Shown here: positions 2,270 through 39,107 of the stretch, in pieces
How positions within the stretch are numbered: the stretch's first letter is position 1
Layout of the letters: each line of letters starts with the position of its first letter
Sequence record: OZ195776.1
Length of the DNA stretch: 64,000 nt
Direction: 5' to 3' (one strand)
Translations under genes and position numbers: made by a program
Notes under the pieces: generated by a model
The model's input: only the letters and a program-made list of their open reading frames with translations
Database searches by the model: none
What the model was told of the DNA's origin: nothing

Positions 2270-5200
2270 TTAACGTTTGAAAAAGTCCAACAGCTTGCGC
2301 CACGTTGGTTTCTTCAATTGCTCGATTTGCTCTTGCTGCTCTTTTATAGCCTCAACTAACAAACCTACCATATTACCATACGCCACTGAATACTTGGCAT
2401 CTGCGTCGTCCTCAGTAGGACCGCCCAATACAGCTTCTGGTAACACCTCAAGCACTTCCTGTGCAATAACACCCGTTTGACGCGAACAATCATCATCGAT
2501 TCTGTCGTAGGTGTAGCCACCTAATTTCATCACTTTCTCTAACGGATTCTCAATCTTTTTGATGTTCGTCTTAACACGAAGATCTGAATATGCAGTAACG
2601 TTACCAGTACAAGTCAAGTCACCTGTGGATGATAGGGACATTTTCTCGACATACGTTACCGTTTCGCTACCAGCTGCGATACTACTATCAGTAGACCACT
2701 TCATTGCTGAGTTAACAGCATCGTTTGCTACTTCGATTTCCCACGCACTACCATCTTCTCTTGATTGATCATGAGCAAGACCGCCACCAAATCTCAAACC
2801 AACGTTGCCGCCACCATCGTTCGTGAATACTTTCATAGCACCGATAATAGCATCACCACCATTGGCATCACCTATCACCAACGAAGAATCGCCAATGTCG
2901 TTGATCTTCACACCAGCAGCAAAAGTAATCTTACCAGCAGCGGTATCACCTGCATCACTTCTCAGGAATTGACTTGCTTGTAATCCGTCAACCTTATCCG
3001 AGTCTGTGGCCTTTCCGTCACTTCTTAGGAACTGGGTTGAATTCAATCCATCCAATAGATCCGAATCAGCAGCTTTCGCGGTAATACCAAGATATCGAGC
3101 ATCTCCCTCGGATTTACTGTATACGCCAACGTGTGTTCTAACGGCACCCATGTCACTACAGAATCGAACGTAATTGTCACTACTGCTATTGACACGATAT
3201 GCAATCGCACCAGCGATCGTAGTTTGATTATTGTAAGTTGGACGAAGCAATCGACAATAAATGTCACCAGAACTGTTTCGTGCAGCGATTGTATTAGCGG
3301 TTCCACCCGTAGCTGATTGCAAACCATCCAACAGATCAGCATCTAATCCACTACCAGCGCCATCGTTATTTGCGTTCCAAATCTCATGATCGGTACCGCC
3401 GCTATCTCTCCACACAGGAGGATTTTGACTGGCTAGTCTAACATCAGCACGTCCAGTACTACCCAGATACGCCGACGTCGCATTTACTTGAAGCAATGGC
3501 TTGTTGTCAGAACCGTAAATCGTATTCATTGAATTGATTCGTTGGTTAAACGTTGCGATTGCTGAGTACGTATTAACAGCAGTCCATGTTTGGGCTTTTG
3601 TTAATTCACCAAATGCAGTACGCTGAGCGCCATCTAACAAATCCGCATCAAGTCCACTACCAGTACCATCGTTACCAGCATGCCAAACTTCGTTGTCAAG
3701 AATCTTCAATCCGGTTTGAGACAACTGCATTACGTTGGTGCTTGCGGTATTCGAGTTGTAATGGTAGTCCCAATTGAACGTTGCTTGCGCAGATGTTCCG
3801 TATCTATGCGCGTTTAACAACCAACCATAGCCTGCGGCAGATGTCGATGATGCGAATGCAATCGAAGTACGGCCAGTTGTATTGGTTGTAGTGCTCGGTT
3901 GCAATACAATAGATGCTGCATCAAAGATCGTGCCATTTGTTTGTGCTTTTGTAATATGAACTTTGTTTTTTGATACGATTCTGTTGTTGAAGTCGTTGTT
4001 ACCAGTCCATGTATTAGCACCAGCTAATTTACCAAATGATGCGTGGTCGTAACCATCCAACGAGTTTGCTTCTTGAGCATACGTGTATGCGTTTGAAATC
4101 GTCGTGCTTAGGTCTGGAATTGCGGTTGCATCGATACTGATGTCCCAACCGTCGTTCCAACGATTTGTATCTGAGTCACCGTACCCATGTTGGAAATCTC
4201 GAATCGATACTTGGGTGTATGACCAACTCGTTGTTGATTCACCGATCCAAACGCAGCAATTTGTACCATCGTGACCAAAGCGTACGTTGTAATTGTTGCC
4301 CTTTGGACCCACAATCGCAGCGCTTGCGTTCACCCACGTAGACGAGCTACCGTAGTTGTAACCACCAATCAACACCGAAAATGTATGCCCAGTTGTATAC
4401 TCATACACATCCACCCAGAATTTCATCATGGTGCTTGTCCACGATACAGGCAATGTAACTTTGATATATCCAGTTGAGGTTGAGGTTGTTGTTTCAAAAT
4501 GACCACCACCGACTGAGTGATGAATACGACCGGTACGGATACCGTTTGCCGCGCCGACGCTAAGGTTATTCGACATACCAACATCTTGGTCGCTTCGTAG
4601 GAATTGACTTCCTTGCAATCCGTCAACAGTGTCGGCATTCAGACCGCTACCAGGACCGTCGTTCCCAGCGTGCCATACTTTATTACCGTTGTATTGAATT
4701 GCATCGGTTTGACTACCAGCCCCACCATTGATTTTCAGAATGTTCTGACCGGACTTGATGTGAACGGTACGACTAGTTTCATTGTCATTCGAATCCGCAT
4801 TCAGCCAAATATCACCAACTGAAGTTAGCGTAATATCCGTTGAGTTGAACTGCAACTCATAACTCGACGCTGCTCCTCGAATGTTGTTTGTGCCCATTGT
4901 TAACAGGCCAGTCATCGTATCGCCTGAAGCGTTTATGTAACGCGCGTCTAGCGTAGTGTAACTATTGGCTGTAAAGATTTCCTTACCTAGCCAATTGAAC
5001 GTAGATCCGCTAGCTACAAAACCGTTAGTTGCGGTGGATCCAACTTGAAATCCCCCATCTGTTCTTACAAAGCTGTTACCGAAATACACGCCTGATGTTG
5101 AATCGCCAGTGTCGTTAATTCGCAACCAACTGTCAGTGGTTCGTACGACAGTTTTGCCAGCTACTTTGAAGTTGGTAACTTTGAAGTCTGCATTACCGTT

Positions 5201-21897: not shown

Positions 21898-21973
21898 TGG
21901 TGGAAGTGGTGGGACTCGAACCCACGACCGACGGCTTATCGGGCCGGCGCTCTACCAACTGAGCTACACTTCC
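21898..21973 (-). tRNA. tRNA-Ile(GAT)
   Basis: Cloverleaf with CCA; unusual C33. Confidence 0.9.
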
Positions 21974-21980
21974 ATTAATA

Positions 21981-22056
21981 TGGTGCACCCTACTGGAATC
22001 GAACCAGTGACGCGAAGATCTTCAATCTACCGCTCTACCATCTGAGCTAAGGGTGC
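21981..22056 (-). tRNA. tRNA-Phe(GAA)
   Basis: Cloverleaf with CCA. Confidence 0.95.
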
Positions 22057-22265
22057 ATATTGTATTCGTTTATATCAAAATCGGTTAACGACTCAACGAG
22101 AATAGTTGCTTTGTAACCTACGTACAATTCATCTCCGTACCACAAGTCGGTGCATTCCTCTACAATATAAGAAGAACCAAGAACGATGTGCTTGATGTTA
22201 AAGAATTGCAAATTGCGTTCAAGAACTGTTTTAGCTCTATCTGTCAATGGTTTGATTTTGATCAT
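22047..22265 (-). CDS. hypothetical protein within the tRNA array
   Basis: AGGAG SD; 72 aa. Confidence 0.5.
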   Translation of the reverse strand: MIKIKPLTDRAKTVLERNLQFFNIKHIVLGSSYIVEECTDLWYGDELYVGYKATILVESLTDFDINEYNMHP

Positions 22266-22296
22266 AACATTCTCCTATTTGGAGAATATTTATAAT

Positions 22297-22372
22297 TGGA
22301 GCGAATGATGAGGTTCGAACTCACGACCTGTTGCTTGGCAAGCAACCGCTCTACCAACTGAGCTACATTCGC
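22297..22372 (-). tRNA. tRNA-Gly(GCC)
   Basis: Cloverleaf with CCA. Confidence 0.95.
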
Positions 22373-22833
22373 ATTTGAACTTTTCGGTTCCCGTGTATAT
22401 TTTGTATGTGGCACGGACCACAACCCCTACGCCTTGGTGCGTCAATGGAGCTAGTATTCGTTATCAAGTGCTGCTTCCATGTGCTACTCCTTATAGGTTT
22501 TCCAAACCCTGATTTCGCACTCTCGGCAGTTTCTACGTCAACTTTTCTTCCGATATCCTTTTGAAACACTCACTATCCAGTTGGATTCGCATTGCTAAGT
22601 GAGGTCCGCATCCTTAATCGATTTGTCGTACACCTGAAAATTTTAATTGCTTTGATCGAACAAATTCTTTATTGCTTTCAAATTAGTCAAATCAACTTGA
22701 AGTTGCCGTAGCATTACTTCGTTCTTTGTTGATTTAATCTGCCTCTCCAAATCCTTTATCAGAAATCCAATAGATGACTTGGTGATATTGAAATAGTTTA
22801 TATTGAAACTCGCATCTGTTAAACCTTTTTGTT

Positions 22834-22910
22834 TGGTGGATAGTGCTGGATTTGAACCAGCGACCAACGGATTATGATTCCGACGAACTACCAGACTGTT
22901 CTAACTATCC
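22834..22910 (-). tRNA. tRNA-Met(CAT), probably elongator
   Basis: Cloverleaf; anticodon loop AT-CAT-AA. Confidence 0.85.
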
Positions 22911-22912
22911 AA

Positions 22913-22988
22913 TGGTGGAGAATATCGGAATCGAACCGATGACCTCCTCCTTGCAAGGGAGGCGCTCTACCAACTGAGCTAAGACCCC
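22913..22988 (-). tRNA. tRNA-Ala(TGC)
   Basis: Cloverleaf with G3:U70 and CCA. Confidence 0.9.
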
Positions 22989-22998
22989 ATTTATTAAA

Positions 22999-23080
22999 TT
23001 CAAGATTGTCTATTGCAGGTGTCCGGACTTACTACTGCATAAAGCTGCTGCCTTCGTTACCTGGTTCAACAATCTTGGAA
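22999..23080 (-). ncRNA. putative structured small RNA
   Basis: CAAGATTGT...ACAATCTTG closing stem and internal CAGGT/ACCTG pairing. Confidence 0.45.
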
Positions 23081-23082
23081 AC

Positions 23083-23160
23083 TGGCAGGAGATGTGGGAC
23101 TCGAACCCAACAACCTTCGGATTTGGAATCCGCTGCTCTACCAATTAGAGCTAATCTCCT
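23083..23160 (-). tRNA. tRNA-Trp(CCA)
   Basis: Cloverleaf with CCA. Confidence 0.9.
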
Positions 23161-23214
23161 ATTGATGATTTTATGTTTTTAACGTGGAGATAATCAACAA
23201 CTCTCACAATCAAT

Positions 23215-23290
23215 TGGGGTGACCTGCGGGGTTCGAACCCGCGACCGCCGGAATCACAATCCAGAGCTCTACCAACTGAGCTAAGGCCAC
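23215..23290 (-). tRNA. tRNA-His(GTG)
   Basis: Cloverleaf with C73; the genomic -1 base is T, not G. Confidence 0.9.
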
Positions 23291-23534
23291 ATCTAAAAAC
23301 ACTCAACGAATGCGCTTAGATGTGATTGCCTCACATCGAATAGTTTCTCGGACTATTCCAAGACTCTGTTACAAGTCACCGCCCTATTCTATCTGTTGTT
23401 ATACTCGTGAAGGGTACCGAGTGGTCTTTTGCAAAACTATCAAGAGTTTAGCTTCGTGCAAGGCTCTTGGACCTTCTACCGATTAGCGATCGGTATTTCC
23501 AGCAATAGAACTAATCGCTCTACTCGTAAAGTTT

Positions 23535-23645
23535 TGAAGAATGATGGGAATTGAACCCACTTCGGATAACAGCATTGTAAAGAGGCTATCGATTATTTCC
23601 TACCGGCTTGTTTCAGACCTGCATTTCCTCTTTGCGAGCATTCTT
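23535..23645 (-). ncRNA. tRNA-like RNA (acceptor stem plus T arm, no anticodon arm)
   Basis: AAGAATG/CATTCTT stem; GTGGG-TTCAATT-CCCAT T arm. Confidence 0.5.
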
Positions 23646-23651
23646 TCAAAT

Positions 23652-23742
23652 TGGCGGAGAGACAGAGACTCGAACTCTGACGACGCTATTAACATCGAAC
23701 GGCTTTCAAGGCCGCGGCAGTACCAATTATGCTTACCTCTCC
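23652..23742 (-). tRNA. tRNA-Ser(TGA)
   Basis: Type II cloverleaf. Confidence 0.95.
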
Positions 23743-23748
23743 AGAATA

Positions 23749-23833
23749 TGGTGCGCAGGGTGGGACTCGAACCCACACGCCCTAAGGCCACGGAATCTAA
23801 ATCCGCGTTGTCTACCAATTCCAGCACCTGCGC
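23749..23833 (-). tRNA. tRNA-Leu(TAG)
   Basis: Type II cloverleaf. Confidence 0.95.
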
Positions 23834-24253
23834 ATGTTATTTCTACACCAGACAATAGGACTTACTTCGACTTATTCCAACGTCTAACGTATTAGCTTCA
23901 CAAGGTCGTCACCTATCATATTCGGATTCACCGTGGTTGCCACCTATTCGATATAACGTCATCGAAAACGACCTGGTATTCACAAGGGCATAATGCCTAT
24001 TTCCAAGTAAACCAACTTCGTCGTAATCATGCTAAAGAGCAAGAATCGAGGTAGTTACCTAATCAACACTCCGTAGAGCTGTTTCCAAGTATTGAAAACG
24101 CATCAAAGAGGCGTGGCCTATCATTCTTAGTTAGGTTTTATTGTTTGCTGGACACTGTCTTCTGTGCAGAACTTTTAATGTGGTTGTTTTTACGATTTCA
24201 AGAGAGCCACACTTCCTTGAGTAACCGTCCTAATCAAGTTAGGAAGGATAATA

Positions 24254-24330
24254 TGGCGGATCCTCAGGGATTTGAACCCCGAACCTTGCGCTTAACAGGC
24301 GCCCGCTCTAACCATTGGAGCTAAGGATCC
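24254..24330 (-). tRNA. tRNA-Asn(GTT)
   Basis: Cloverleaf with CCA. Confidence 0.95.
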
Positions 24331-24336
24331 GTAATA

Positions 24337-24413
24337 TGGCGCACCGAGTAGGACTCGAACCTACCTCAATCCTCGTTCGTAGCGAGGTGCCAATCCAGAT
24401 TGACTACCGGTGC
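24337..24413 (-). tRNA. tRNA-Arg(ACG)
   Basis: Cloverleaf with CCA. Confidence 0.9.
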
Positions 24414-24420
24414 AAAAATT

Positions 24421-24497
24421 TGGCGGGTGTGACGGGATTTGAACCCGCTACCTACGACGTGACAGGCCGTTATGCAAACCAACTACACCTCACACCC
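24421..24497 (-). tRNA. tRNA-Asp(GTC)
   Basis: Cloverleaf with CCA. Confidence 0.95.
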
Positions 24498-24498
24498 T

Positions 24499-24714
24499 TT
24501 AAGAAACTACATGTACAATACCTAGGATTGGAAGAACTATAAACCAACAAAGCAAAATTAAGAAGAACAATCCTGTACCAATGATACCAGGTAATTGCTT
24601 TAGACGATATCCCCAAAGTCCATACTTCTTGATCTGTTTCTGACGTTCTAACTCTGCTCGACGAGCGATATTCTCGGAGCTAAAGTAGTTCAGTATATCT
24701 CTTGTATCAAACAT
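24499..24714 (-). CDS. small membrane protein
   Basis: C-terminal TM helix; weak SD. Confidence 0.45.
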   Translation of the reverse strand: MFDTRDILNYFSSENIARRAELERQKQIKKYGLWGYRLKQLPGIIGTGLFFLILLCWFIVLPILGIVHVVS

Positions 24715-24729
24715 ATAATTCTCATAAAC

Positions 24730-24807
24730 TGGTCGGAACTGTAGGATTCGAACCTACGACCCCTTGCTCCCAAAGCAAGCGCTGCTACCAAACTGAGCTA
24801 AGTTCCG
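24730..24807 (-). tRNA. tRNA-Pro(TGG)
   Basis: Cloverleaf with CCA. Confidence 0.95.
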
Positions 24808-24816
24808 AAAATAACT

Positions 24817-24876
24817 GGATACGTTTGTCTTTTTTTTCAAATAAAAAATTAGATTTAATGTTTGCTGAATGTATCC
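24817..24876 (-). ncRNA. minimal motif RNA
   Basis: GGATAC-ATTCAGCAAAC...GTATCC end-to-end stem. Confidence 0.55.
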
Positions 24877-24882
24877 ATAAAC

Positions 24883-24958
24883 TGGCTGGCGTAGGAGGAC
24901 TCGAACCTCCGACCATCGGTATCAAAAACCGATGCGCTACCAACTGCGCTATACGCCA
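24883..24958 (-). tRNA. tRNA-Gln(TTG)
   Basis: Cloverleaf with CCA. Confidence 0.95.
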
Positions 24959-24965
24959 ATAAAAC

Positions 24966-25042
24966 TGGTGGGTGTAGAAGGACTCGAACCTTCGACCACT
25001 CGATTAAAAGTCGAGTGCTCTAACCAACTGAGCTACACACCC
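24966..25042 (-). tRNA. tRNA-Lys(TTT)
   Basis: Cloverleaf with CCA. Confidence 0.95.
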
Positions 25043-25114
25043 AAATCTTGTAACTGAGATAAGCATCTCATGTTTCCATTTGAAAGTAAACCAGTTATTT
25101 GATTTACTTTGAAA

Positions 25115-25191
25115 TGGAAGCGGGAGGTGGATTTGAACCACCGACCTTTGGGTTATGAGCCCAATAAGCTACCAGACTGCTCCATCCCGCT
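25115..25191 (-). tRNA. initiator tRNA-fMet(CAT)
   Basis: Three G:C pairs closing the anticodon stem; A1:U72. Confidence 0.9.
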
Positions 25192-25197
25192 ACAATT

Positions 25198-25282
25198 TGG
25201 TGGGAACACATACCTCCGTGGGCTTATCAACAATACTTCACTGACTCGTAAAGTTGATTACCTTCTCCGAAGAGAACTCCCA
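25198..25282 (-). ncRNA. CCA-ended non-tRNA small RNA
   Basis: TGGGA...TTCCCA-CCA ends, no cloverleaf. Confidence 0.45.
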
Positions 25283-25287
25283 TAATT

Positions 25288-25365
25288 TGGTTCTCGAGAC
25301 GGGAATCGAACCCGCTAATCCCACCTTGAAAGGGTGGTGACTCAACCAGATGGTCTGCCCGAGAA
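25288..25365 (-). tRNA. tRNA-Glu(TTC)
   Basis: Cloverleaf with CCA. Confidence 0.95.
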
Positions 25366-25370
25366 TTGTT

Positions 25371-25456
25371 TGGTGGGCCATCCTGGACTCGAACCAGGAA
25401 CTCCGTGAGGAGGACGGATTTACAATCCGCTGCAATCGCCATTCTGCCAACGACCC
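25371..25456 (-). tRNA. tRNA-Tyr(GTA)
   Basis: Type II cloverleaf. Confidence 0.95.
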
Positions 25457-25481
25457 AATGTATTTTTAACTAATGTTATCC

Positions 25482-25556
25482 TGGTGCTCTGTGACGGATT
25501 CGAACCGCCGTCACCTCATTACAAGTGAGGTGCTAAACCAACTCAGCTAACAGAGC
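25482..25556 (-). tRNA. tRNA-Thr(TGT)
   Basis: Cloverleaf with CCA. Confidence 0.95.
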
Positions 25557-25571
25557 AACGTATTTGTAGTT

Positions 25572-25600
25572 ATTATCCAGCATTCCAGCTGGTTGTAAAC
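25572..25600 (-). promoter_or_regulatory. T4-type early promoter
   Basis: GTTTAC-17 nt (ending TG)-GATAAT just upstream of tRNA-Thr. Confidence 0.65.
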
Positions 25601-25608
25601 TTGAAAGC

Positions 25609-25665
25609 AAAAAAAAAGCCGCTTTAATAAGCGGCTTCTATAAATCTTTGGAATATAGAAGACGC
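25609..25665 (-). terminator. terminator with overlapping antiterminator (attenuator)
   Basis: AAGCCGC-8-GCGGCTT-T tract; competing stem GCGTCTTCTATA/TATAGAAGCCGC. Confidence 0.8.
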
Positions 25666-25667
25666 AG

Positions 25668-25724
25668 TTAGCTCGCAGGATTTGTTTCGTAAATGTAAAA
25701 TTTTTGAAGTGAATGTGCGAACAT
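25668..25724 (-). CDS. leader peptide MFAHSLQKFYIYETNPAS
   Basis: AAGGA SD 7 nt before ATG; stop 2 nt before the antiterminator 5' arm. Confidence 0.6.
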   Translation of the reverse strand: MFAHSLQKFYIYETNPAS

Positions 25725-25846
25725 AATTGATTCCTTTGGGAAAAATAAACTTTTTTTCTTTCTCTTACTTTATATATAACAGCTTACTCAAGGATTCGGC
25801 TGTTTTAAACAAAAAATTTGAATTTTTTTCAAATTAATTTAGAATG

Positions 25847-25938
25847 TGGCGGAAGGAGAGGGACTCGAACCCTCAGACCGGCTATTAACCAGTCGATTCC
25901 TTAGCAGGGAACTCCGATACCAATTATGGGATCCTTCC
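25847..25938 (-). tRNA. tRNA-Ser(GCT)
   Basis: Type II cloverleaf. Confidence 0.95.
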
Positions 25939-25948
25939 GTTGTATATC

Positions 25949-26033
25949 TGGTACGGGTAGCGGGAGTCGAACCCGCACCTCCTAAGAGAGTGGATTTTAA
26001 GTCCACAGCATATGCCAATTTCGCCATACCCGT
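25949..26033 (-). tRNA. tRNA-Leu(TAA)
   Basis: Type II cloverleaf. Confidence 0.95.
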
Positions 26034-26040
26034 ATAAATT

Positions 26041-26127
26041 TGGTGCCAGTGGCCGGACTCGAACCGGCACGGTATTTCTACCACAGGATTTTGAATCCTG
26101 CGCGCCTACCAATTACGCCACACTGGC
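26041..26127 (-). tRNA. tRNA-Leu(CAA)
   Basis: Type II cloverleaf. Confidence 0.95.
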
Positions 26128-26128
26128 T

Positions 26129-26206
26129 TGGAGCTGCGTGAGGGATTCGAACCCCCGAAGCTTGGATTTGCAATCCAGTACATTAGACCAACTCTGCCAA
26201 CACAGC
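26129..26206 (-). tRNA. tRNA-Cys(GCA)
   Basis: Cloverleaf with CCA. Confidence 0.95.
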
Positions 26207-26293
26207 ATTTTTCAAGTTCACACTTTTGATTAGTACGGTAGTGACTCTCCGTAATGTGGTGACCCGCCGTGGACTCGAACCACGCCCTATCGA

Positions 26294-26770
26294 TTATTCT
26301 GAACGCTCTGTGCGTCTGCGTCTATACGTTGATGTTTGTGAATGACAATTTGGACACAACCAGGATAGGTTTTCCTTCCGATTATCGTTGCTAATTCCAT
26401 TAACATGTTCCAGCTCCAATGTAAGAGGTTTCCCATTCCAAGTATCCGGAATTCCACACTCATCACAGTGGTTTCGATAGAACCCTAATCGAATTGATAT
26501 TTGTCGGGCGCTGCTACGAGGTGCAGTGCAATTCTCTACAAAGAACGATTCTTCGGTGTGTGAAAATTTATTACGCTTAAACGTCTTTTTAACATCAAAG
26601 TGTTCAGTAGACACGTCGTACTTATCACACAGCACTTTCAATCGATTTATATTGTATGTACAGACCGTTATACCAACACCACGGCACACATCACTCCAAC
26701 AAAACGAATCACTTGCTACGGTGATTAGCTGTTCTAACGTATAGTGCTTAAAATCTTTATTGCTTTTCAT
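26294..26770 (-). mobile_element. HNH homing endonuclease inside the tRNA anticodon loop
   Basis: CDECG...LELEHVNGISNDNRKENLSWLCPNCHSQT. Confidence 0.9.
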
Positions 26771-26775
26771 TTTCT

Positions 26776-26814
26776 ACTCCTACTGCTGATGTGTTATTTA
26801 TACAGCAGTAGGAG
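26776..26814 (-). promoter_or_regulatory. late promoter in an RBS-sequestering hairpin
   Basis: CTCCTACTGCTG-TATAAATA-ACACAT-CAGCAGTAGGAG. Confidence 0.85.
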
Positions 26815-26863
26815 ATAATGAGTCGATTGCTCTCAACCAGGTGAGCTATCGGGCCACATAAAC

Positions 26864-26940
26864 TGGAGCAAGTGACGGGACTCGAACCCGCGACCACCGA
26901 CTTGGAAGGACGGAACTCTACCAACTGAGTTTACACTTGC
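26864..26940 (-). tRNA. tRNA-Gly(TCC)
   Basis: Cloverleaf with CCA. Confidence 0.95.
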
Positions 26941-26946
26941 AAAACT

Positions 26947-27051
26947 GGATGTACAAAATAGCTCACCATTACCTCAACCCAGAGTAACGTTAGTCTTTTA
27001 CGACTTGGCTCCTGATATGTAATTTTAGGTTATTGTTTGCGGTAGACATCC
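26947..27051 (-). ncRNA. stand-alone motif RNA
   Basis: GGATGT-CTACCG-CAAA...TTTG-T-ACATCC end-to-end stem with internal loop. Confidence 0.6.
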
Positions 27052-27079
27052 AAGGTCGAACCTTGACGAATCAAGATCT

Positions 27080-27409
27080 TTAAAACTGTTCACCTTTCGG
27101 CTCTTCGGTATTTAGAAGAGTAACCAAATCGTTTAGCGCATTATACTTGTTTATTTCAAGTTTTGTCGCTGGACGAAGGATTTCAGTGCTTTCCCAAGAA
27201 TGAGATGTGTAGTGTTCAACATCATGAACCCAATCCCAATTGTGTAGATATGCACTATCCGGAAGTTTAATGGAATGTTTGAAGTTGGTTTTCAACTTAC
27301 GTAAAAGAGTATCTGTGCTAACTGAGCCAGAGTAAACCGCTTTTGCCAATTGTTCATCGGTAATTCGCAATTTTCTTGTAACCAGTTCGCTACCTTCAAT
27401 CATGTTCAT
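27080..27409 (-). CDS. hypothetical protein, paralog of 27406-27717
   Basis: Shared (I/V)TDEQL, W..D and LR(P/K)AT..EI motifs. Confidence 0.75.
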   Translation of the reverse strand: MNMIEGSELVTRKLRITDEQLAKAVYSGSVSTDTLLRKLKTNFKHSIKLPDSAYLHNWDWVHDVEHYTSHSWESTEILRPATKLEINKYNALNDLVTLLNTEEPKGEQF

Positions 27410-27717
27410 TTCTTCATCCCGTATTCGTGACGTAGAACATTGATTGCATCATAGATCGCAATCTCACCCATTGTTGCTTTGCGAAGAAACTTCTTCTCGA
27501 TCCAGCGACCGGTACCATCCATATCTTGGTGGTAATGCCAATTGCCGTGTTCTAAGAATGCTTCTTTACGAAGCTCACCTTGCTTGCGCAGGTTCAATCC
27601 AAGTTTGTCAATCAGAACCTCAGATGGTATAGAACCGTCTGAGAACGCTTCTAAGAGCTGTTCGTCTGTAACTTGAATCTCACAAGGAACAAGACGAGTA
27701 CCTTTAATAGTATTCAT
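27406..27717 (-). CDS. hypothetical protein, paralog of 27080-27409
   Basis: GAGG SD; same motifs as neighbour. Confidence 0.75.
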   Translation of the reverse strand: MNTIKGTRLVPCEIQVTDEQLLEAFSDGSIPSEVLIDKLGLNLRKQGELRKEAFLEHGNWHYHQDMDGTGRWIEKKFLRKATMGEIAIYDAINVLRHEYGMKK

Positions 27718-27736
27718 TATATCCTCTTTAAATGAG

Positions 27737-27812
27737 TGGCACGCCTGGAGGGATTCGAACCCACGACCCGAAACTTAGAAGGTTCCTGCTCTTCCAACTG
27801 AGCTACAAGCGC
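27737..27812 (-). tRNA. tRNA-Arg(TCT)
   Basis: Cloverleaf with CCA. Confidence 0.95.
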
Positions 27813-29758: not shown

Positions 29759-29877
29759 TGGCGCGTGTGACAGGACTCGAACCTGTGACCTCCGGCGGGA
29801 TTAATGTAATTGCTGTAACGATTCATTACTGAATCCATTTATTAGGCCGGCATTCTAACCAACTGAATTACACACGC
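29759..29877 (-). ncRNA. tRNA-shaped RNA with motif insert (Asp-like D arm)
   Basis: GCGTGTG/CACACGC-G-CCA; insert GATTCA-GTAA-TGAATC-GTTACAGCAATT. Confidence 0.75.
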
Positions 29878-29884
29878 GATGTTA

Positions 29885-30028
29885 AAAACAATTTGAGCAG
29901 CGTACAGGATTCGAACCTGTGTTACCTCCTGGAAATGGAATTAGCGTTAGTTGCTGAAAGCATCTTTACCAAGATACATTGCTTTTAGGTGTCCTAGGCC
30001 ACTAGACGAACGCTGCTCAAATTGTTTT
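29885..30028 (-). ncRNA. tRNA-shaped RNA with motif insert (Glu-like D arm) and extended acceptor stem
   Basis: Insert GTATCTT-GGTA-AAGATGC-TTTCAGCAACT; ~18-bp terminal inverted repeat; no CCA. Confidence 0.75.
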
Positions 30029-30034
30029 TATTAA

Positions 30035-30177
30035 GTCTTATTGCCGGCGGGGCTGGATTCGAACCAGCGACCTCGTGCTCCCTATGCAATTAATAATTGG
30101 TTGCGGTACCCAATCTTTTCAGATTGGTTTATTAATACGCGCGCTAACCTGACTGCGCTACCCGCCGGCAATAAGAC
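30035..30177 (-). ncRNA. tRNA-shaped RNA with motif insert and extended acceptor stem
   Basis: Insert CCAATCT-GAAA-AGATTGG-GTACCGCAACC; ~17-bp terminal inverted repeat; no CCA. Confidence 0.75.
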
Positions 30178-34304: not shown

Positions 34305-34823
34305 TTATGCTACTGGTCCAACTAAAGTTTTGCCGTCCATTAACATATCGAAATATGAATACTCGAATGTTACATCACAAGTAATTGCATCGACATCACC
34401 TTGTTCCGTATAAGTCCATTCAATATCCCCAATGGATTTTGGAAAAGGATTGATAAACTTAAATGATGCCATTATCTTGTCCTTGTTATTATCAAGGATA
34501 TGCAAAAGCATAGTAGCTGGAATCTTGCCTTCAAATTCACTACCACCTGTTGGATTGTTCATTGTAAGCATCCAAGAAAGTAATTCCTTGTATGTTAAAA
34601 GTTCCTCGTCAACGATAAATGTGATAGTTAAGTCATCGTAGCTAGTTGCAGAACCAGCTACATGATTGTTTGCAATCTTGGCATACTTCGGACCATTTAC
34701 TATAGGAGCAATCTCTAGCGATACTCCTGGAATAGTCAAATTCTGAATCTGCCAAACGAAGTTATCAAATGCCGAATCTGGAATATCCAATCGGAAGTTG
34801 TTCTTCATTGCTAGATTTTTCAT
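34305..34823 (-). CDS. 3: tail tube terminator gp3
   Basis: NFRLDIP..TIPG..YDDLTITFIVDEEL...SWM. Confidence 0.85.
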   Translation of the reverse strand: MKNLAMKNNFRLDIPDSAFDNFVWQIQNLTIPGVSLEIAPIVNGPKYAKIANNHVAGSATSYDDLTITFIVDEELLTYKELLSWMLTMNNPTGGSEFEGKIPATMLLHILDNNKDKIMASFKFINPFPKSIGDIEWTYTEQGDVDAITCDVTFEYSYFDMLMDGKTLVGPVA

Positions 34824-36760
34824 AAAGCACCGCCTGGTCTTGATGTTTTAGCAGAACCACTAGTTGTTAGTGGTGCACTCATTGAAACTTTGGAACTACT
34901 ATCTGATACGCTATTGTTAGTAACTTGGTTTTGAACAACGACTTGTTGTCTTTGCATTTCAGCACCATTTAATTTACGATTTGCGTTTTCTAATTCCAAC
35001 GATCGTCTACGTGCATCCATGACTTGGAGACGTGCCCACAAACGTTCTTCTTCTGGAGTTGATAAATCATCTTGTTTGCGATTCAACAATGCTTTCATCT
35101 CTTCATCCGTCATTGTTTGAAGAGCTAGGTTATCGTTCAAGTTTTCAATTGAAGTGCCAACTGCATCTAGTGGATGACCAATCGTATCGCGAATATCCTT
35201 GCCAACCTGCTTAACAGAATCAACGGTCGCCTTCGCAGCATCTTGAACATACTCTTGTTTCATACGTTCAGCCATTCGCTCGCTTAATTCCATCTGAGCT
35301 TTATCGATTTCCGATTGACGTTTTTCTGAATCAGCAATCATCTCTTCGCCGGTATCGCCGAACCCTGGAATGTAGCTAATCATTTTACCGATGCCTAACT
35401 TAACATCATTCATCATGTCTTCGATAGAAAGGATCATGTACTGGAAAGCGTCAGGAATCGATGCAAACGCACCTATGACCTTATTAACACCATTGATGAC
35501 CATCATGAAGTTGTTCTTCACTGTTTCAATATACCATTCAACTCCGCTTATAACAGAATCTAGCATACCTTCTGGCATCATCTCTGCGATGTCGGATCCA
35601 GTATCGGTAAACCAACCCGTAATAGAACCTATAACACTACTAAACCAGCCAGTTATGTTTTGCCATAGAGCAGCTCTCTTTTTGGGGTCTCCAAAAATAC
35701 TAGCTAATCCAGCAAATATACGATCGAACTCTTCTTCAAATATCTTGTATATTGAGTATCCGGCGACCAATCCAATTAGGACCACAGGGTTCATCATCAT
35801 ACCAATGACGCGCGTTAATCCCATAAATGTTTGACGGACCAGTGTAACAAACCATTTCGAAATGGTGCCACGGAAGTCAATCATCAACTCACCGGTACCT
35901 TTTGAAAGTAGACCAAGTCCCTTTAAGGACCCCGAAACCACTCTCGCCATGCCACCAAGCAATTTATTCGATGTAGCTAATGCTCCAACCTTACTTGATA
36001 AGAACATCAATCCACTTGATGCCATCACAAAGCCCGTACCAACAAACGTCAGTATTTTCTGCCACATAGAGACATTCGGACCGATTAAATGGGTTAGGAT
36101 GCGACGTACGTTATCGCCTAAAGTACGTTGAAATTTATTTGATTCTTTCCAACGAGCTGTTGCGGTTTTACGAGCACGAGTATCTGTAATTAAGTTGTAT
36201 GTGAATATCTTGTTGTACAAACCAGAAACCCAACCAACTGTTAGTGGTGCGTTCTGTCCTGTAGATGCGTTCAGATAATCCTGCATCCCTTGTTGAGCCA
36301 GCTTCTGCATCGCTGCATCGCGTCTCATTTCCTTCGTGCTATTCGTAACTGTGTCAATCAGTCGTTGTTCGAGAGTAACCATTCGAATAAAGCCATTTTT
36401 CGTAGCTGTTTTAATCGAATCCCAAGTGTTCTGCATTTTCAAGAAATGCGAGTTGAAGTCCAAAGCTGCAACGATGGTATCGCGTACGTTTTGCAACGCA
36501 GCAGACATTCTGCTTTGTTGACTCTGCCATGCCTCTTGCCACTTCACAAATAAACTTTTCTGTGCTTCCGCTTGCTTGTCGTTAGCACCAAACGCTTCTA
36601 CCAGTTTATCGAAAATTTTGCTTGTGGTTAAATCAACGTTGCTTGTGTACATCGCAACGCGTTGCATGGAGGCTGCTTCTGGACTATCGTCAGATTGCAT
36701 AACGATGAGATCGAGACGTGCGATAATCTCATCAATCTGCTTTTTATTGTCCGATGCCAT
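34820..36760 (-). CDS. tape measure / baseplate hub gp29-like
   Basis: Helical, central hydrophobic segments, C-terminal QNQVTNNS; follows the 26/51-like gene. Confidence 0.65.
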   Translation of the reverse strand: MASDNKKQIDEIIARLDLIVMQSDDSPEAASMQRVAMYTSNVDLTTSKIFDKLVEAFGANDKQAEAQKSLFVKWQEAWQSQQSRMSAALQNVRDTIVAALDFNSHFLKMQNTWDSIKTATKNGFIRMVTLEQRLIDTVTNSTKEMRRDAAMQKLAQQGMQDYLNASTGQNAPLTVGWVSGLYNKIFTYNLITDTRARKTATARWKESNKFQRTLGDNVRRILTHLIGPNVSMWQKILTFVGTGFVMASSGLMFLSSKVGALATSNKLLGGMARVVSGSLKGLGLLSKGTGELMIDFRGTISKWFVTLVRQTFMGLTRVIGMMMNPVVLIGLVAGYSIYKIFEEEFDRIFAGLASIFGDPKKRAALWQNITGWFSSVIGSITGWFTDTGSDIAEMMPEGMLDSVISGVEWYIETVKNNFMMVINGVNKVIGAFASIPDAFQYMILSIEDMMNDVKLGIGKMISYIPGFGDTGEEMIADSEKRQSEIDKAQMELSERMAERMKQEYVQDAAKATVDSVKQVGKDIRDTIGHPLDAVGTSIENLNDNLALQTMTDEEMKALLNRKQDDLSTPEEERLWARLQVMDARRRSLELENANRKLNGAEMQRQQVVVQNQVTNNSVSDSSSKVSMSAPLTTSGSAKTSRPGGAL

Positions 36761-36938
36761 TTTTCATTTGTTCCTCTTTTTGTTTGATGTGTTGTGTTAA
36801 CAACATCGCGTATATTTCCCGCTCGAACGGAAGCATATCCTCCACATCTCTCAAGGAAAAGCTCCCGTGTTCAACGAGAGCAAAGTTTTCCTGGTAGTAT
36901 TCTTGTAGAGAATGACGCCCGAGCGTTACACGAAAAAA
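36744..36938 (-). CDS. gp51-type C-terminal domain in the -1 frame, no own start codon
   Basis: SLQEYYQENFALVEHGSFSLRDVEDMLPFEREIYAMLL; frame opens exactly at T TTT TTC after two TGA stops. Confidence 0.8.
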   Translation of the reverse strand, partial: FFRVTLGRHSLQEYYQENFALVEHGSFSLRDVEDMLPFEREIYAMLLTQHIKQKEEQMKNGIGQ

Positions 36939-37807
36939 TCATCAATGCCGCTAAGTGCAATCTTTTCAAAATTACCACACTTAGGACATTTCACATCAAT
37001 AAACACGGTCAAACGTGGAGTTTGGTCGATAAAGTCACGAATTTGTGTAAACGCAGCAATACTCAACTGATCCATGATCTGAACCAACATACCTTGCTGT
37101 TGCAATTCCTGTTTCGTGTACATAGTATCACCTACATGCACTTCGCTAATCGCTTCTGTTGCTAAGTTAAACAACCCGATTGACGTGGTTGGATCATTTT
37201 CTTCGAATCCGCGAATGTTTGGGTGTTTCAATTTGATTGCCACCTGGTCATTCACTTTAACCATGTCCGAACCAGCAAACGGTGTTACGAACGTCTTGTT
37301 CAAGTCAATCTCACAGCGAATACGTTCGCCACAAACCTTCTCATCCGGACGTAGTAGTTCGTCAACCAGTTCATCTGCCGTCATTTCGCGTTCTGGCTCA
37401 GGACGTACAATTAAATCAGCAAATTCGTCACCTTCCGCGATTGCATCGCTACGCACTTGTTTGCGTTCGTCGATAATCGCTTGTAGTTCTTCATCGGATT
37501 TAGGCGCAGCACAGTGGTATTCTGCTGTTAACACAGGAGAACCGTTGCTATTTGCGTACATCTGAACAAACAGATATTCTGCATCTGCCACATGCAAATC
37601 TTCAATCTTGACATCAGATAGAATGCTTTTCTCGAGACATTGCTCAATTGCATCGATTTTCTGTTCAGACTCGTTAGCCAAGTTAAGCAACTTGTGCTCA
37701 CCTGCCGTCAATGAACGCATTTTAATCACTTCGCCAGATTGCGGTAGAGTTACCGTGGTATGTGGCGTTTTCATTACATTCAAATCGAATTTTTTCATTT
37801 CAGTCAT
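36926..37807 (-). CDS. 26: baseplate hub assembly chaperone gp26-like
   Basis: TLPQSGEVIKMRSLT, IKLKHP, C-terminal KCPKCG...GIDDFFV. Confidence 0.8.
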   Translation of the reverse strand: MTEMKKFDLNVMKTPHTTVTLPQSGEVIKMRSLTAGEHKLLNLANESEQKIDAIEQCLEKSILSDVKIEDLHVADAEYLFVQMYANSNGSPVLTAEYHCAAPKSDEELQAIIDERKQVRSDAIAEGDEFADLIVRPEPEREMTADELVDELLRPDEKVCGERIRCEIDLNKTFVTPFAGSDMVKVNDQVAIKLKHPNIRGFEENDPTTSIGLFNLATEAISEVHVGDTMYTKQELQQQGMLVQIMDQLSIAAFTQIRDFIDQTPRLTVFIDVKCPKCGNFEKIALSGIDDFFV

Positions 37808-37819
37808 TTCATTATTCCT

Positions 37820-38653
37820 TTATAAACCAATGCCGTTTAAAGCACCTAACGATGCGTTATATTTCGAACCAAAATCAGTGTTTGCGTCTGCAATTTGGTC
37901 GAATGTGTTGCCTTTGATGATACTAGCCATCTCTTCACTGATCGCATTAACGTAGTTGAATGTGCTGAATGTAAATTCAACTTCAAACGTTGATACTTCG
38001 TTGTTATTCTCGTAAGATAACTCAACGTCGCCAATTCTCATTGGAAACGCTTTGGATAGCGATGTTACTGTAGCTGGATCACCATTGCGCTTTAATGTAA
38101 TTATCTCGATGCTTTTTTCGTACTCAGCCGCAAATGCAACTTGACACGTAGTTGAGCTAAAGATCGATTTCTGCCAGGCCAACATAATCTGGCGTTCTTC
38201 GTGACCAGGTGATAGATAGAATTGCATCGTTACAGTTCCAGAATCCTTACCTTTAACCACTTTTTGAGTTTTGCGACGTTGATAGTCTGACTCAACTTCA
38301 AGTGTACGTCCTGGTAGATTTGCACCTTTGGCCATCATTGCTAATTTAGCTTCTCTTGTCGGATCAGCGCCAAAATAATCAGCTACCATTGAAGAAGCAT
38401 CACCGTTCAACACACCCTTAATGCCGGTACGTTTCAAAGCACCAAATTGAGAGCGAACTTCTGATGCAGTTTTTAGCGCACTATCTGCTGCTTTGAACCA
38501 CCCATCGACTTGATCTAGTGTACCTTGTGGACTACCCACCACACCATTGTTGTTGATGTAGTTTTCGAGAGATGGAAACGCCACCAAGTACAAATTACTT
38601 CGTGCTACGTCGTCCTGATCCATCTTTGCAACAAATTGCCTTACGCTAAACAT
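37820..38653 (-). CDS. 54: baseplate tail tube initiator gp54
   Basis: ARSNLY..., NLPG, FPMRIGDVELSYENNNEVSTFEVEF. Confidence 0.8.
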   Translation of the reverse strand: MFSVRQFVAKMDQDDVARSNLYLVAFPSLENYINNNGVVGSPQGTLDQVDGWFKAADSALKTASEVRSQFGALKRTGIKGVLNGDASSMVADYFGADPTREAKLAMMAKGANLPGRTLEVESDYQRRKTQKVVKGKDSGTVTMQFYLSPGHEERQIMLAWQKSIFSSTTCQVAFAAEYEKSIEIITLKRNGDPATVTSLSKAFPMRIGDVELSYENNNEVSTFEVEFTFSTFNYVNAISEEMASIIKGNTFDQIADANTDFGSKYNASLGALNGIGL

Positions 38654-38654
38654 G

Positions 38655-39107
38655 TTACACCTTCAATCCTATTAATTTTCGTAAAGACACTTCAGTTAAA
38701 ACCTTAAATGTCCAACCCTTCTGTCTGGCAAATTTCGACGCCGCTTCCCATTTATCCGAATTCACTTTAAACGTGTATGCTTCGTGCAACAATCGCTTCT
38801 TGGCTTTCTCGGTCATGCGTTGAGGCTTCTCAGGTGGCTTGGTTTCCTTGAGAGGTTTGATTTCGAAGATAAACTCACGTCCATCTTCCAACTTCATGTA
38901 AATGTCCATAAAGTAGCGACGTTTCTTGCCGTCTGCTGTACTGAAATATGGAATTACTATGGTTTCTGACCCCCATCTGACCACGGCCGGATTATTGTCT
39001 AACCATCTAAACATCGACAATTCCCACGAACTGCGATACTCAATGTTACTCAAGTTGCCTTTGTATTTGCTCAGATTACGAGGCTTGTATTTTCCACTAT
39101 ATGCCAT
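38655..39107 (-). CDS. 4: head completion protein gp4
   Basis: MAYSGKYKPRNLSKYKG...YRSSWE...RRYFMD...EIKP. Confidence 0.95.
   Translation of the reverse strand: MAYSGKYKPRNLSKYKGNLSNIEYRSSWELSMFRWLDNNPAVVRWGSETIVIPYFSTADGKKRRYFMDIYMKLEDGREFIFEIKPLKETKPPEKPQRMTEKAKKRLLHEAYTFKVNSDKWEAASKFARQKGWTFKVLTEVSLRKLIGLKV

Follow-up and report, generated by a model that had tools for sequence, protein, structure and literature searches.

Gene 26 of Vibrio phage D479 very likely yields a gp26-gp51 fusion through programmed -1 frameshifting

Introduction

Do phages of the T4 superfamily produce a frameshifted pair of tail chaperones from a single gene, in the manner of lambda, or do they encode the two proteins separately? 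This question is raised by a gene 26 found in the 64,000-nt stretch analysed here and referred to below as the window. The stretch belongs to record OZ195776.1, the 257.8-kb genome of Vibrio phage D479, a phage obtained from seawater and oysters; 3.9 kb surrounding the site were compared with this genome and proved identical to it. The lambda G/GT tail assembly chaperones and their counterparts in long-tailed phages are reportedly the subject of Levin, Hendrix and Casjens (1993) and of Xu, Hendrix and Duda (2004). A 2016 review describes G-T frameshifting as conserved among long-tailed phages 'except T4' (PMC5009743). T4 gp51 is essential for hub assembly while not being present in the virion, and the same source counts gp26 as well as gp51 among the hub assembly chaperones (PMC3004832).

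According to an original prediction made from the letters of the window, ribosomes shift by -1 on a T TTT TTC heptamer at the end of D479 gene 26, producing a gp26-gp51 fusion directly upstream of the tape measure gene. On the evidence of the conservation of both the heptamer and the -1 frame, we consider it very likely that such a trans-frame fusion is made by programmed -1 frameshifting in D479.

Results

The slip site and the -1 extension in D479

The 3′ end of D479 gene 26 reads ATT GAT GAT TTT TTC GTG TAA, placing an in-phase X XXY YYZ heptamer one codon before the stop of the upstream open reading frame (ORF). The features of this junction are given below; KVP40 is a distant vibriophage relative whose gp26 is 52% identical to that of D479.

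36926-37807, minus strand: gene 26, with a zero-frame product of 293 aa belonging to the T4 gp26/gp51 'baseplate hub / hub assembly chaperone' family
36939-36944, minus strand: TGA TGA in the -1 frame, immediately 5′ of the heptamer
36932-36938, minus strand: slippery heptamer T TTT TTC in X XXY YYZ phase, made up of the codons for Phe291-Phe292 and the last base of the Asp290 codon
36926-36928, minus strand: zero-frame stop TAA of gene 26, one codon past the heptamer (TAACG in D479, TAATG in KVP40)
36744-36931, minus strand: -1 extension of 62 codons (RVTLGRH...GIGQ) plus stop, the equivalent of the T4 gp51 C-terminal domain
36744-36836, minus strand: 30-aa coding sequence (CDS) VPHD479_0400, annotated in OZ195776.1 as 'baseplate hub assembly catalyst', which begins at an internal ATG and is without the conserved first half of the motif

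The tandem TGA is a by-product of the Ile-Asp-Asp codons ATT GAT GAT and is not conserved in KVP40, yet in D479 it means that the -1 frame cannot be entered further upstream. From the heptamer onward, this frame encodes FFRVTLGRHSLQEYYQENFALVEHGSFSLRDVEDMLPFEREIYAMLLTQHIKQKEEQMKNGIGQ and closes at the stop codon at 36744-36746, overlapping the start of the downstream 646-aa gene (36760) by 17 nt. Joined to residues 1-292 of gp26, the 62 residues of the extension would give a predicted trans-frame product of 354 aa. The -1 peptide carries the gp51 C-terminal motif and matches PHROG 634 ('baseplate hub assembly catalyst', gp51) with E=4.4e-22, as well as the last 45 positions (237-281) of phrog_150, the gp26/gp51 profile. 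Pfam also has a newer entry, PF28602 Gp51_C.

The earliest canonical start codons of the D479 -1 frame, namely TTG, GTG and ATG at codons 29, 32 and 35, are all situated beyond the YYQENFALV..FSL portion of the motif. In the stretch preceding the internal ATG, substitutions among six vibriophage sequences are distributed over the -1 codon positions 1:2:3 as 143:60:244, a coding-type pattern which indicates that this stretch is translated. The original prediction had described the junction correctly in all its sequence statements: the GAT TTT TTC GTG TAA ending, the canonical heptamer at 36938-36932 and its phase, the two TGA codons (36944-36939) closing the -1 frame right before it, the gp51-type motif beyond it with no start codon ahead of that motif, and the overlap with the next gene, a probable tape measure. 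Its remark that the ORF track misses the -1 ORF holds for the full extension, which is not annotated, but overlooks the 30-aa stub starting at the internal ATG in the public record.

The bare TTTTTTC string is not rare in principle, and the significance of the gene 26 copy comes from its position and its conservation in relatives. Both strands of the window together carry eight copies against 21.5 ± 4.7 expected, with more copies in 100 of 100 dinucleotide shuffles, a depletion consistent with avoidance of slippery T-runs. The gene 26 copy is the sole one on the sense strand within an ORF of at least 50 aa, the remaining plus-strand sites having been judged by gene layout and not by the ORF listing.

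Conservation of the slip site in relatives

Conservation was assessed in 91 unique sequences spanning 20-90% protein identity. Eleven come from sequenced phages (D479, KVP40, K566, D484, Aeh1, S-CAM3, Cronobacter S13, Stenotrophomonas Marzo, VmeM-32, CC2 and Aeromonas phage 65) and 80 from cyanophage-like IMG/VR contigs that are 47-90% identical to S-CAM3. The site reads nnT TTT TTC in 90 of them and nnT TTT TTT in the remaining one. The first Phe codon is accordingly TTT in 91/91 and the second TTC in 90/91, with a single TTT. The residue preceding the Phe pair varies among Ser, Asn, Asp and Ala, and its codon among TCT (34 sequences), AGT (32), AAT (12), GAT (11) and GCT (2), while the third base is T in every case.

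This uniformity exceeds what the protein sequence needs. The other Phe-Phe pairs of the same genes (n=71) are mostly written TTC TTT (45), followed by TTT TTT (19), TTT TTC (4) and TTC TTC (3), and TTT makes up 72% of the Phe codons in these genes. The difference in TTT TTC usage between the slip site and the other pairs is highly significant (Fisher p=2e-39), with the caveat that relatedness makes the sequences non-independent. Third positions next to the site show free variation, and synonymous sites are hence saturated at such divergence. The stop of gene 26 lies one codon past the heptamer in 89/91 relatives. Seven more loci agree, namely those of three close D479 relatives, Xanthomonas BUDD, Variovorax V45v66, S-RSM4 and P-HM2. 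Conservation of the heptamer at gp26 ends had been set beforehand as a check on the prediction, and it is found in 91/91 sequences, once as T TTT TTT.

As a direct homologue search yielded 11 relatives, a profile search of 1.84 billion representatives was used for breadth and returned 6056 gp26-family clusters at 50% identity. Among the top 149 of these 6056 clusters, the C-terminus is Phe-Phe plus 0-3 residues in 122 and Phe-Leu plus one residue in 17. We inspected the DNA behind six variant gp26 endings: two Phe-Leu endings are encoded by T TTT TTA, one ending in Asp-Phe-Phe plus 8 residues by T TTT TTT, and three short metagenomic contigs have a T-run only, of five T in two and of four T (a U UUU tetramer) in one. 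Locus searches were of little use here: the D479 protein alone led to one irrelevant locus and the T4 gp26 query to near-identical T4 copies only, and a six-sequence alignment was too diverse to serve as the scan query for related loci.

The heptamer is absent from the end of gene 26 in phages that have a separate full-length gp51. T4 has GAG TTC TTT GAG at this place, and Acinetobacter phage Octan, 44RR and RB49 have nothing comparable. In RB16, which also has a separate gp51, gene 26 closes with a T TTA AAG that is in phase (RB16 locus 2576-2582). We considered this classic slippery heptamer as a second frameshift site and rejected it, as the -1 frame closes after 9 codons; it is probably fortuitous.

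The -1 frame, its start codons and its annotation

Counts for the -1 frame were taken over 100 loci. In 93 of them, the codon that follows the heptamer in this frame encodes Arg (CGN), while the overlapping zero-frame codon drifts among Ala, Gly, Val, Asp and Glu. All five have codons of the form GNN, as would be expected if the -1 frame were held to CGN. The length of the extension ranges from 55 to 66 aa.

A start codon is frequently, though not universally, available near the junction. Within the first nine -1 codons, ATG occurs in 62 loci, GTG or TTG only in 13, and no start at all in 25, the last group including the whole D479 clade along with Aeh1, S13, CC2 and phage 65. D479 and its three nearest relatives (71%, 54% and 53% identity) all read TAACG with the ORF intact; a -1 ORF devoid of its own start is thus shared within this clade, though it is not universal across the family. 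In KVP40, K566, D484 and Marzo, an ATG overlaps or abuts the gp26 stop.

Public annotation of this ORF is uneven. After gene 26, Aeh1 (locus 3265-3447), S13, VmeM-32 and CC2 show a gap where the gp51-type -1 ORF lies, and in S-CAM3, S-RSM4, P-HM2, phage 65 and D479 the sole annotation is a stub of 26-44 aa starting from an internal ATG. A slippage join is marked in none of the annotated relatives that we examined.

T4 gp51 as a counterpart of the predicted fusion

Transcription of T4 genes 26 and 51 is divergent, and hence no frameshift can link them. Residues 1-201 of T4 gp51 (249 aa) match PF12322 with E=3.9e-52, and its last ~48 residues carry the motif of the D479 -1 ORF, the C-terminus matching phrog_634. 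Taken together, these matches identify T4 gp51 as a gp26 paralogue with a C-terminal extension. The original prediction was right that T4 encodes 26 and 51 separately, but it understated the case, since T4 gp51 is itself a gp26 paralogue bearing the same extension.

In D479, the gp26-like domain and the gp51 motif do not share one continuous ORF, as they lie in different frames with a stop between them, and become continuous only when read trans-frame. We made such reads across the heptamer for D479, KVP40, Aeh1, CC2, S13, Marzo, S-CAM3, P-HM2 and BUDD. Aligned with the full-length gp51 of T4, Octan, 44RR, RB16 and RB49, the predicted products are gap-free at the junction (FF|RVTLGRHSLQEYYQENFALV versus VF|KLLVNPDEIFTFYQINHTL). 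The fusion predicted for D479 would thus be the form that T4 makes from an ordinary gene, and this sequence-based identification of T4 gp51 as an extended gp26 paralogue is the strongest argument for the putative fusion as the functional form.

Stimulatory elements

The original prediction had pointed to a hairpin 5 nt past the heptamer. The stem-loop ACGC-UCGG-GCGU is present as described (36915-36926, minus strand), but its folding energy of -3.6 kcal/mol is not significant (z=-0.43; 61 of 200 shuffles fold as well), and the 45-nt window after the D479 heptamer stands at the 56th percentile of windows from the same gene; this weak stem-loop is probably not a stimulator. Nor does D479 have a Shine-Dalgarno (SD)-like element ~10 nt 5′ of the heptamer, the duplex at this place having an energy of -1.7 kcal/mol (50th percentile). 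Further downstream, inside the -1 ORF and ~50 nt past the heptamer, there is an 8-bp stem-loop (36861-36881, minus strand; GCUCUCGU-UGAAC-ACGGGAGC followed by UUUUCC) that resembles a terminator and is too distant for a usual frameshift stimulator.

The relatives are better equipped. Their Glu codon located four codons before the site is GAG in 70/73 cases against a 31% background and, together with an invariant Gly codon, forms GAGG 10 nt upstream of the heptamer in most of them; the SD-like duplex of the cyanophages has a median at the 2.5th percentile. The 45 nt past the cyanophage site fold with a mean energy of -11.2 kcal/mol, compared with -5.2 kcal/mol for windows of the same genes, and 56 of 79 lie at or below the 5th percentile. 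In one cyanophage subgroup, a stem pair changes among U-A, A-U and G-C in a compensatory manner. An RNAalifold consensus structure for 66 cyanophage sites contained no pairs; the subgroups use different hairpins in slightly shifted registers, and per-sequence energies and a covariation count within the subgroup were used in its place.

Family and predicted structure of gp26

D479 gp26 is a significant full-length match to PF12322 T4_baseplate (E=3.5e-39; 135 bits against a cut-off of 24.5; residues 16-292) and matches phrog_150 with E=2.9e-45. Sequence searches in PDB and NCBIfam gave no match. Its AlphaFold model has a pLDDT (predicted local distance difference test score) of 88, and a Foldseek search of a viral structure library found the fold again in gp26-type proteins of many large myoviruses (CP220, SP-15, phiRSL1, PaBG and one Ackermannviridae member). 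Against the PDB, Foldseek returned nothing significant for this model (best E=0.47). The HK97 tail assembly chaperone 2ob9 scored below any threshold (E=2.3, probability 0.20, template modelling score 0.42 on the target), and lambda gpG aligned to gp26 by hhalign with a probability of 0.1%.

Neighbouring genes

On the minus strand, the locus runs from a gene for a gp4-type head closure protein through a tail-tube-like gene, gene 26, a 165-nt gap and the 646-aa gene to a second tube-like gene. Gene 26 is flanked by the following genes:

37820-38653, minus strand: tail-tube-like gene of the gp19/gp54 type, 277 aa, directly upstream of gene 26 (phrog_45, E=1.6e-35)
34820-36760, minus strand: probable tape-measure gene or gp29 equivalent, 646 aa (phrog_1535 'tail length tape measure protein', E=2.3e-10; phrog_15654)

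The 277-aa protein also matches PF06841 (E=4.4e-6), its 27.0 bits being slightly under the Pfam cut-off of 28.2. BLASTP found no significant similarity between the 646-aa protein and T4 gp29 (E=0.089), and the tape-measure assignment is therefore based on position, size and a weak PHROG match. With this qualification, two overlapping ORFs are seen between a tube-like gene and a probable tape-measure gene.

Several further observations concern the surroundings. Two phrog_45 tail-tube-like paralogues (34305-34823 and 37820-38653, minus strand) flank the pair formed by gene 26 and the tape-measure gene, and the downstream one (34305-34823) occupies the place where the KVP40 annotation has gp3 (tail completion and sheath stabilizer protein). 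For the gp4-type 'head closure' protein (38655-39107, minus strand), there is a match to PF08722, the N-terminal domain of TnsA-like endonucleases (E=4.3e-22). On the minus strand, 21898-27812 is occupied by 25 clustered tRNA genes, tRNA-Phe(GAA) among them. At 29762-30167 (minus strand), the public record has three oversized 'tRNA' features of 116-124 nt; the Rfam tRNA model covers 29762-29877 over 116 nt, which suggests an insert or intron, and at 29895-29982 ARAGORN calls a tRNA with no identity assigned and a four-base anticodon 'gcaa'.

Discussion

The heptamer at the end of gene 26, conserved beyond the needs of the protein, and the conserved -1 frame that opens behind it argue for a single gene with two products. 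The absence of start codons in the D479 clade and in Aeh1-like phages, the coding-type substitutions, and the absence of the heptamer where gp51 is a separate gene give further support to this part of the original prediction. Under the mechanism that we propose, most ribosomes would read Phe291-Phe292-Val and stop, yielding gp26 of 293 aa. A smaller share, whose P and A sites both hold tRNA-Phe on UUU UUC, would slip one base back onto U UUU UU, pass the UAA in the -1 frame and add 62 residues, giving a 354-aa fusion whose reading frame closes shortly after the start of the probable tape-measure gene. Both the slippage and its efficiency are inferred. D479 has a tRNA-Phe(GAA) gene of its own (21981-22056), coding for the tRNA that would slip at U UUU UUC. 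The fusion would correspond to T4 gp51, with a gp26-like domain and the same C-terminal extension. One activity, presumably chaperoning of the tape-measure/hub complex, would be common to the short form and the N-terminal part of the long one, and the extension would add a second contact required only in small amounts; the binding partners of both forms are presumed from gene order and T4 genetics only.

The same sequences can be read in other ways. The -1 ORF might be translated independently, as a free peptide of ~60 aa, through re-initiation near the gp26 UAA (at ACG in D479, at the overlapping AUG in KVP40), and the T-run might be conserved only because gp26 needs Phe-Phe. The ATG codons that overlap or abut the stop in KVP40, K566, D484 and Marzo, or lie within nine codons of the site in 62 of 100 loci, are what such a view would expect, and several public records do annotate a separate small gp51 CDS. 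Nevertheless, we regard it as improbable: a quarter of the loci, including the whole D479 clade, Aeh1, S13, CC2 and phage 65, have no start to use, no SD sequence precedes the D479 ACG at a useful distance, and the Arg codon kept in 93/100 loci lies upstream of all nearby ATGs. Moreover, a need for Phe-Phe explains neither TTT TTC in 90/91 slip sites against 4/71 elsewhere nor the invariant T across five different preceding codons, and T4 gp51 bears its extension fused to a gp26-like domain. A second alternative is transcriptional slippage, in which RNA polymerase adds one base at the six-T run in a fraction of transcripts and the same fusion protein results; the conserved element is indeed a homopolymer, and in a few variants a T-run (T5 or T7) is kept although the X XXY YYZ pattern is imperfect. 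Transcriptional slippage in bacteria typically involves runs of eight or more, and six T are short for it to be efficient. The base after the run is C in 90/91 relatives, and the run was never lengthened in most lineages. Since, in addition, the SD-like element (10 nt) and the hairpin (6-8 nt) of the relatives are ribosomal stimulators at the right spacing, slippage by the polymerase strikes us as quite improbable.

It could also be supposed that the gp51 frame of D479 is no longer expressed, being a decaying remnant whose ATG was lost to ACG and whose function is dispensable or supplied otherwise. At the stop overlap, D479 and KVP40 differ by exactly this ATG-to-ACG change, and D479 has no stimulators. 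However, the ACG state is common to relatives at 71%, 54% and 53% identity, in which the ORF is intact and conserved at the protein level; the substitution pattern is that of a translated frame, the surrounding 16 kb revealed no further gp26/gp51 homologue, and gp51 is essential in T4 (PMC3004832), all of which makes decay very improbable. An assembly error, with seven T in the true genome and gp26-gp51 as one ordinary ORF, is hardly credible: homopolymers are error-prone in some sequencing chemistries, but the same six-T run, with the stop one codon later, recurs in ~100 independent assemblies of isolates and metagenomes from many projects.

Several points weigh against a programmed frameshift in D479. 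The gp26-gp51 fusion is a product predicted from sequence. ATG lies close behind the heptamer in the majority of relatives, with KVP40 as the extreme case (TAATG), and those with a nearby ATG may make a free ~58-aa peptide by coupled re-initiation. Three of the metagenomic variants keep only a five-T run, or in one case four T. No homology of gp26 to gpG-type chaperones is detected by hhalign or Foldseek, and the probable tape-measure identity of the 646-aa gene depends on a weak PHROG match. Finally, D479 has neither of the two usual stimulators, the SD-like element and the 3′ structure. In E. coli reporters, the U UUU UUC heptamer without stimulators gave only slightly more than 0.1% frameshifting; H_HH.U_UU.Y heptamers are among the most efficient in E. 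coli, and U_UU.U_UU.C is used by insertion sequence elements (PMC4066793). The efficiency in D479 may consequently be low, which may in turn suit a hub assembly catalyst that is absent from the particle.

Beyond D479, these comparisons suggest that a lambda-style frameshifted tail-chaperone pair also exists in T4-like phages, for so long quoted as exceptional. We think it likely that the T4 superfamily is no exception at all, with gp51 being made only as a -1 extension of gp26 at U UUU UUC outside the branch of T4, RB49, 44RR, RB16 and the Acinetobacter phages, and with T4 gene 51 representing a hard-wired copy. This wider reading would cover the Schizo-T4 vibriophages, the Aeh1-like and CC2-like Aeromonas phages, the marine cyanomyoviruses, and phages of Stenotrophomonas, Xanthomonas and Variovorax. 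We found no published description of a gp26/gp51 frameshift in the searchable full text; key subscription papers lay outside it, and prior knowledge is thus possible. The record of Acinetobacter phage Octan (MT409116.1, locus 589-2056) gives gp26 and gp51 alike the name 'tape measure protein assembly chaperone'. Among the annotations we have seen, it alone states a G/GT-like role, and it shows that the functional analogy is at least in circulation.

G/GT frameshifting is a textbook example of recoding in phage assembly, and the T4 superfamily is indicated to follow the same logic with an unrelated protein family; together with the ~100 relatives, the D479 locus indicates that T4 swapped the frameshift for a gene duplication. 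This offers a testable role for T4 gp26 and gp51, two proteins that have lacked a clear function in hub assembly since the 1970s. Frameshifted expression would also explain why gp51 is missing or a mere stub in cyanophage and vibriophage annotations and why it was omitted from the T4-like core genes. For gene callers and curators, it follows that gene 26 of such phages should be annotated as a slippage join. For specialists in phage assembly and recoding, to whom these findings are most relevant, the relatives provide a large set of naturally occurring U UUU UUC sites, some accompanied by SD and hairpin stimulators and others not, that can be used for studying frameshift efficiency.

Comparison with known systems

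The closest comparison is with T4 itself. D479 gp26 belongs to the same Pfam family as T4 gp26 and gp51, and its -1 extension is homologous to the last ~48 residues of T4 gp51. In T4, as in RB49, 44RR, RB16 and Octan, the two forms are separate paralogous genes and T4 gene 26 has no slippery site, whereas in D479 one gene would yield both. KVP40 has the same gp51-like ORF (NP_899574, 55 aa) in -1 phase relative to gene 26, and the same heptamer. Its ATG overlaps the gp26 stop, however, and the ORF is annotated as an independent gene, without a frameshift, the annotation recording its similarity to the T4 gp51 C-terminus.

The flanking elements found in the relatives are reminiscent of E. coli dnaX (tau/gamma), with an SD-like GAGG 10 nt upstream of the heptamer and, in the cyanophage clade, a hairpin 6-8 nt downstream. 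D479 differs from dnaX in having neither element, and whereas the shifted product of dnaX is the shorter one, that of gene 26 would be the longer.

From lambda, the D479 system departs in its components. gp26 has no detectable sequence or fold relationship to gpG and, at 210-290 aa, is about twice as large as G (~140 aa); unlike G, many gp26 members have Cys pairs suggesting a zinc ribbon. The annotated T ORF of lambda has 144 codons, compared with the short gp26 extension of 55-66 aa, and its slip site is G GGA AAG in place of U UUU UUC. Hence, when gp26 and gp51 were originally predicted to be the G/GT equivalents, this was well founded as an analogy but not as a homology, and the parallel is a functional one, residing in gene order and expression logic. 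In these respects, the likeness is close: two products, here predicted, with a common N-terminus; a longer form arising by a -1 shift at an X XXY YYZ site a few codons before the upstream stop; a downstream ORF without its own start; a location between a tail-tube gene and the tape-measure gene; and, in T4, a counterpart of the longer form, gp51, that is required for assembly while being absent from the virion (PMC3004832).

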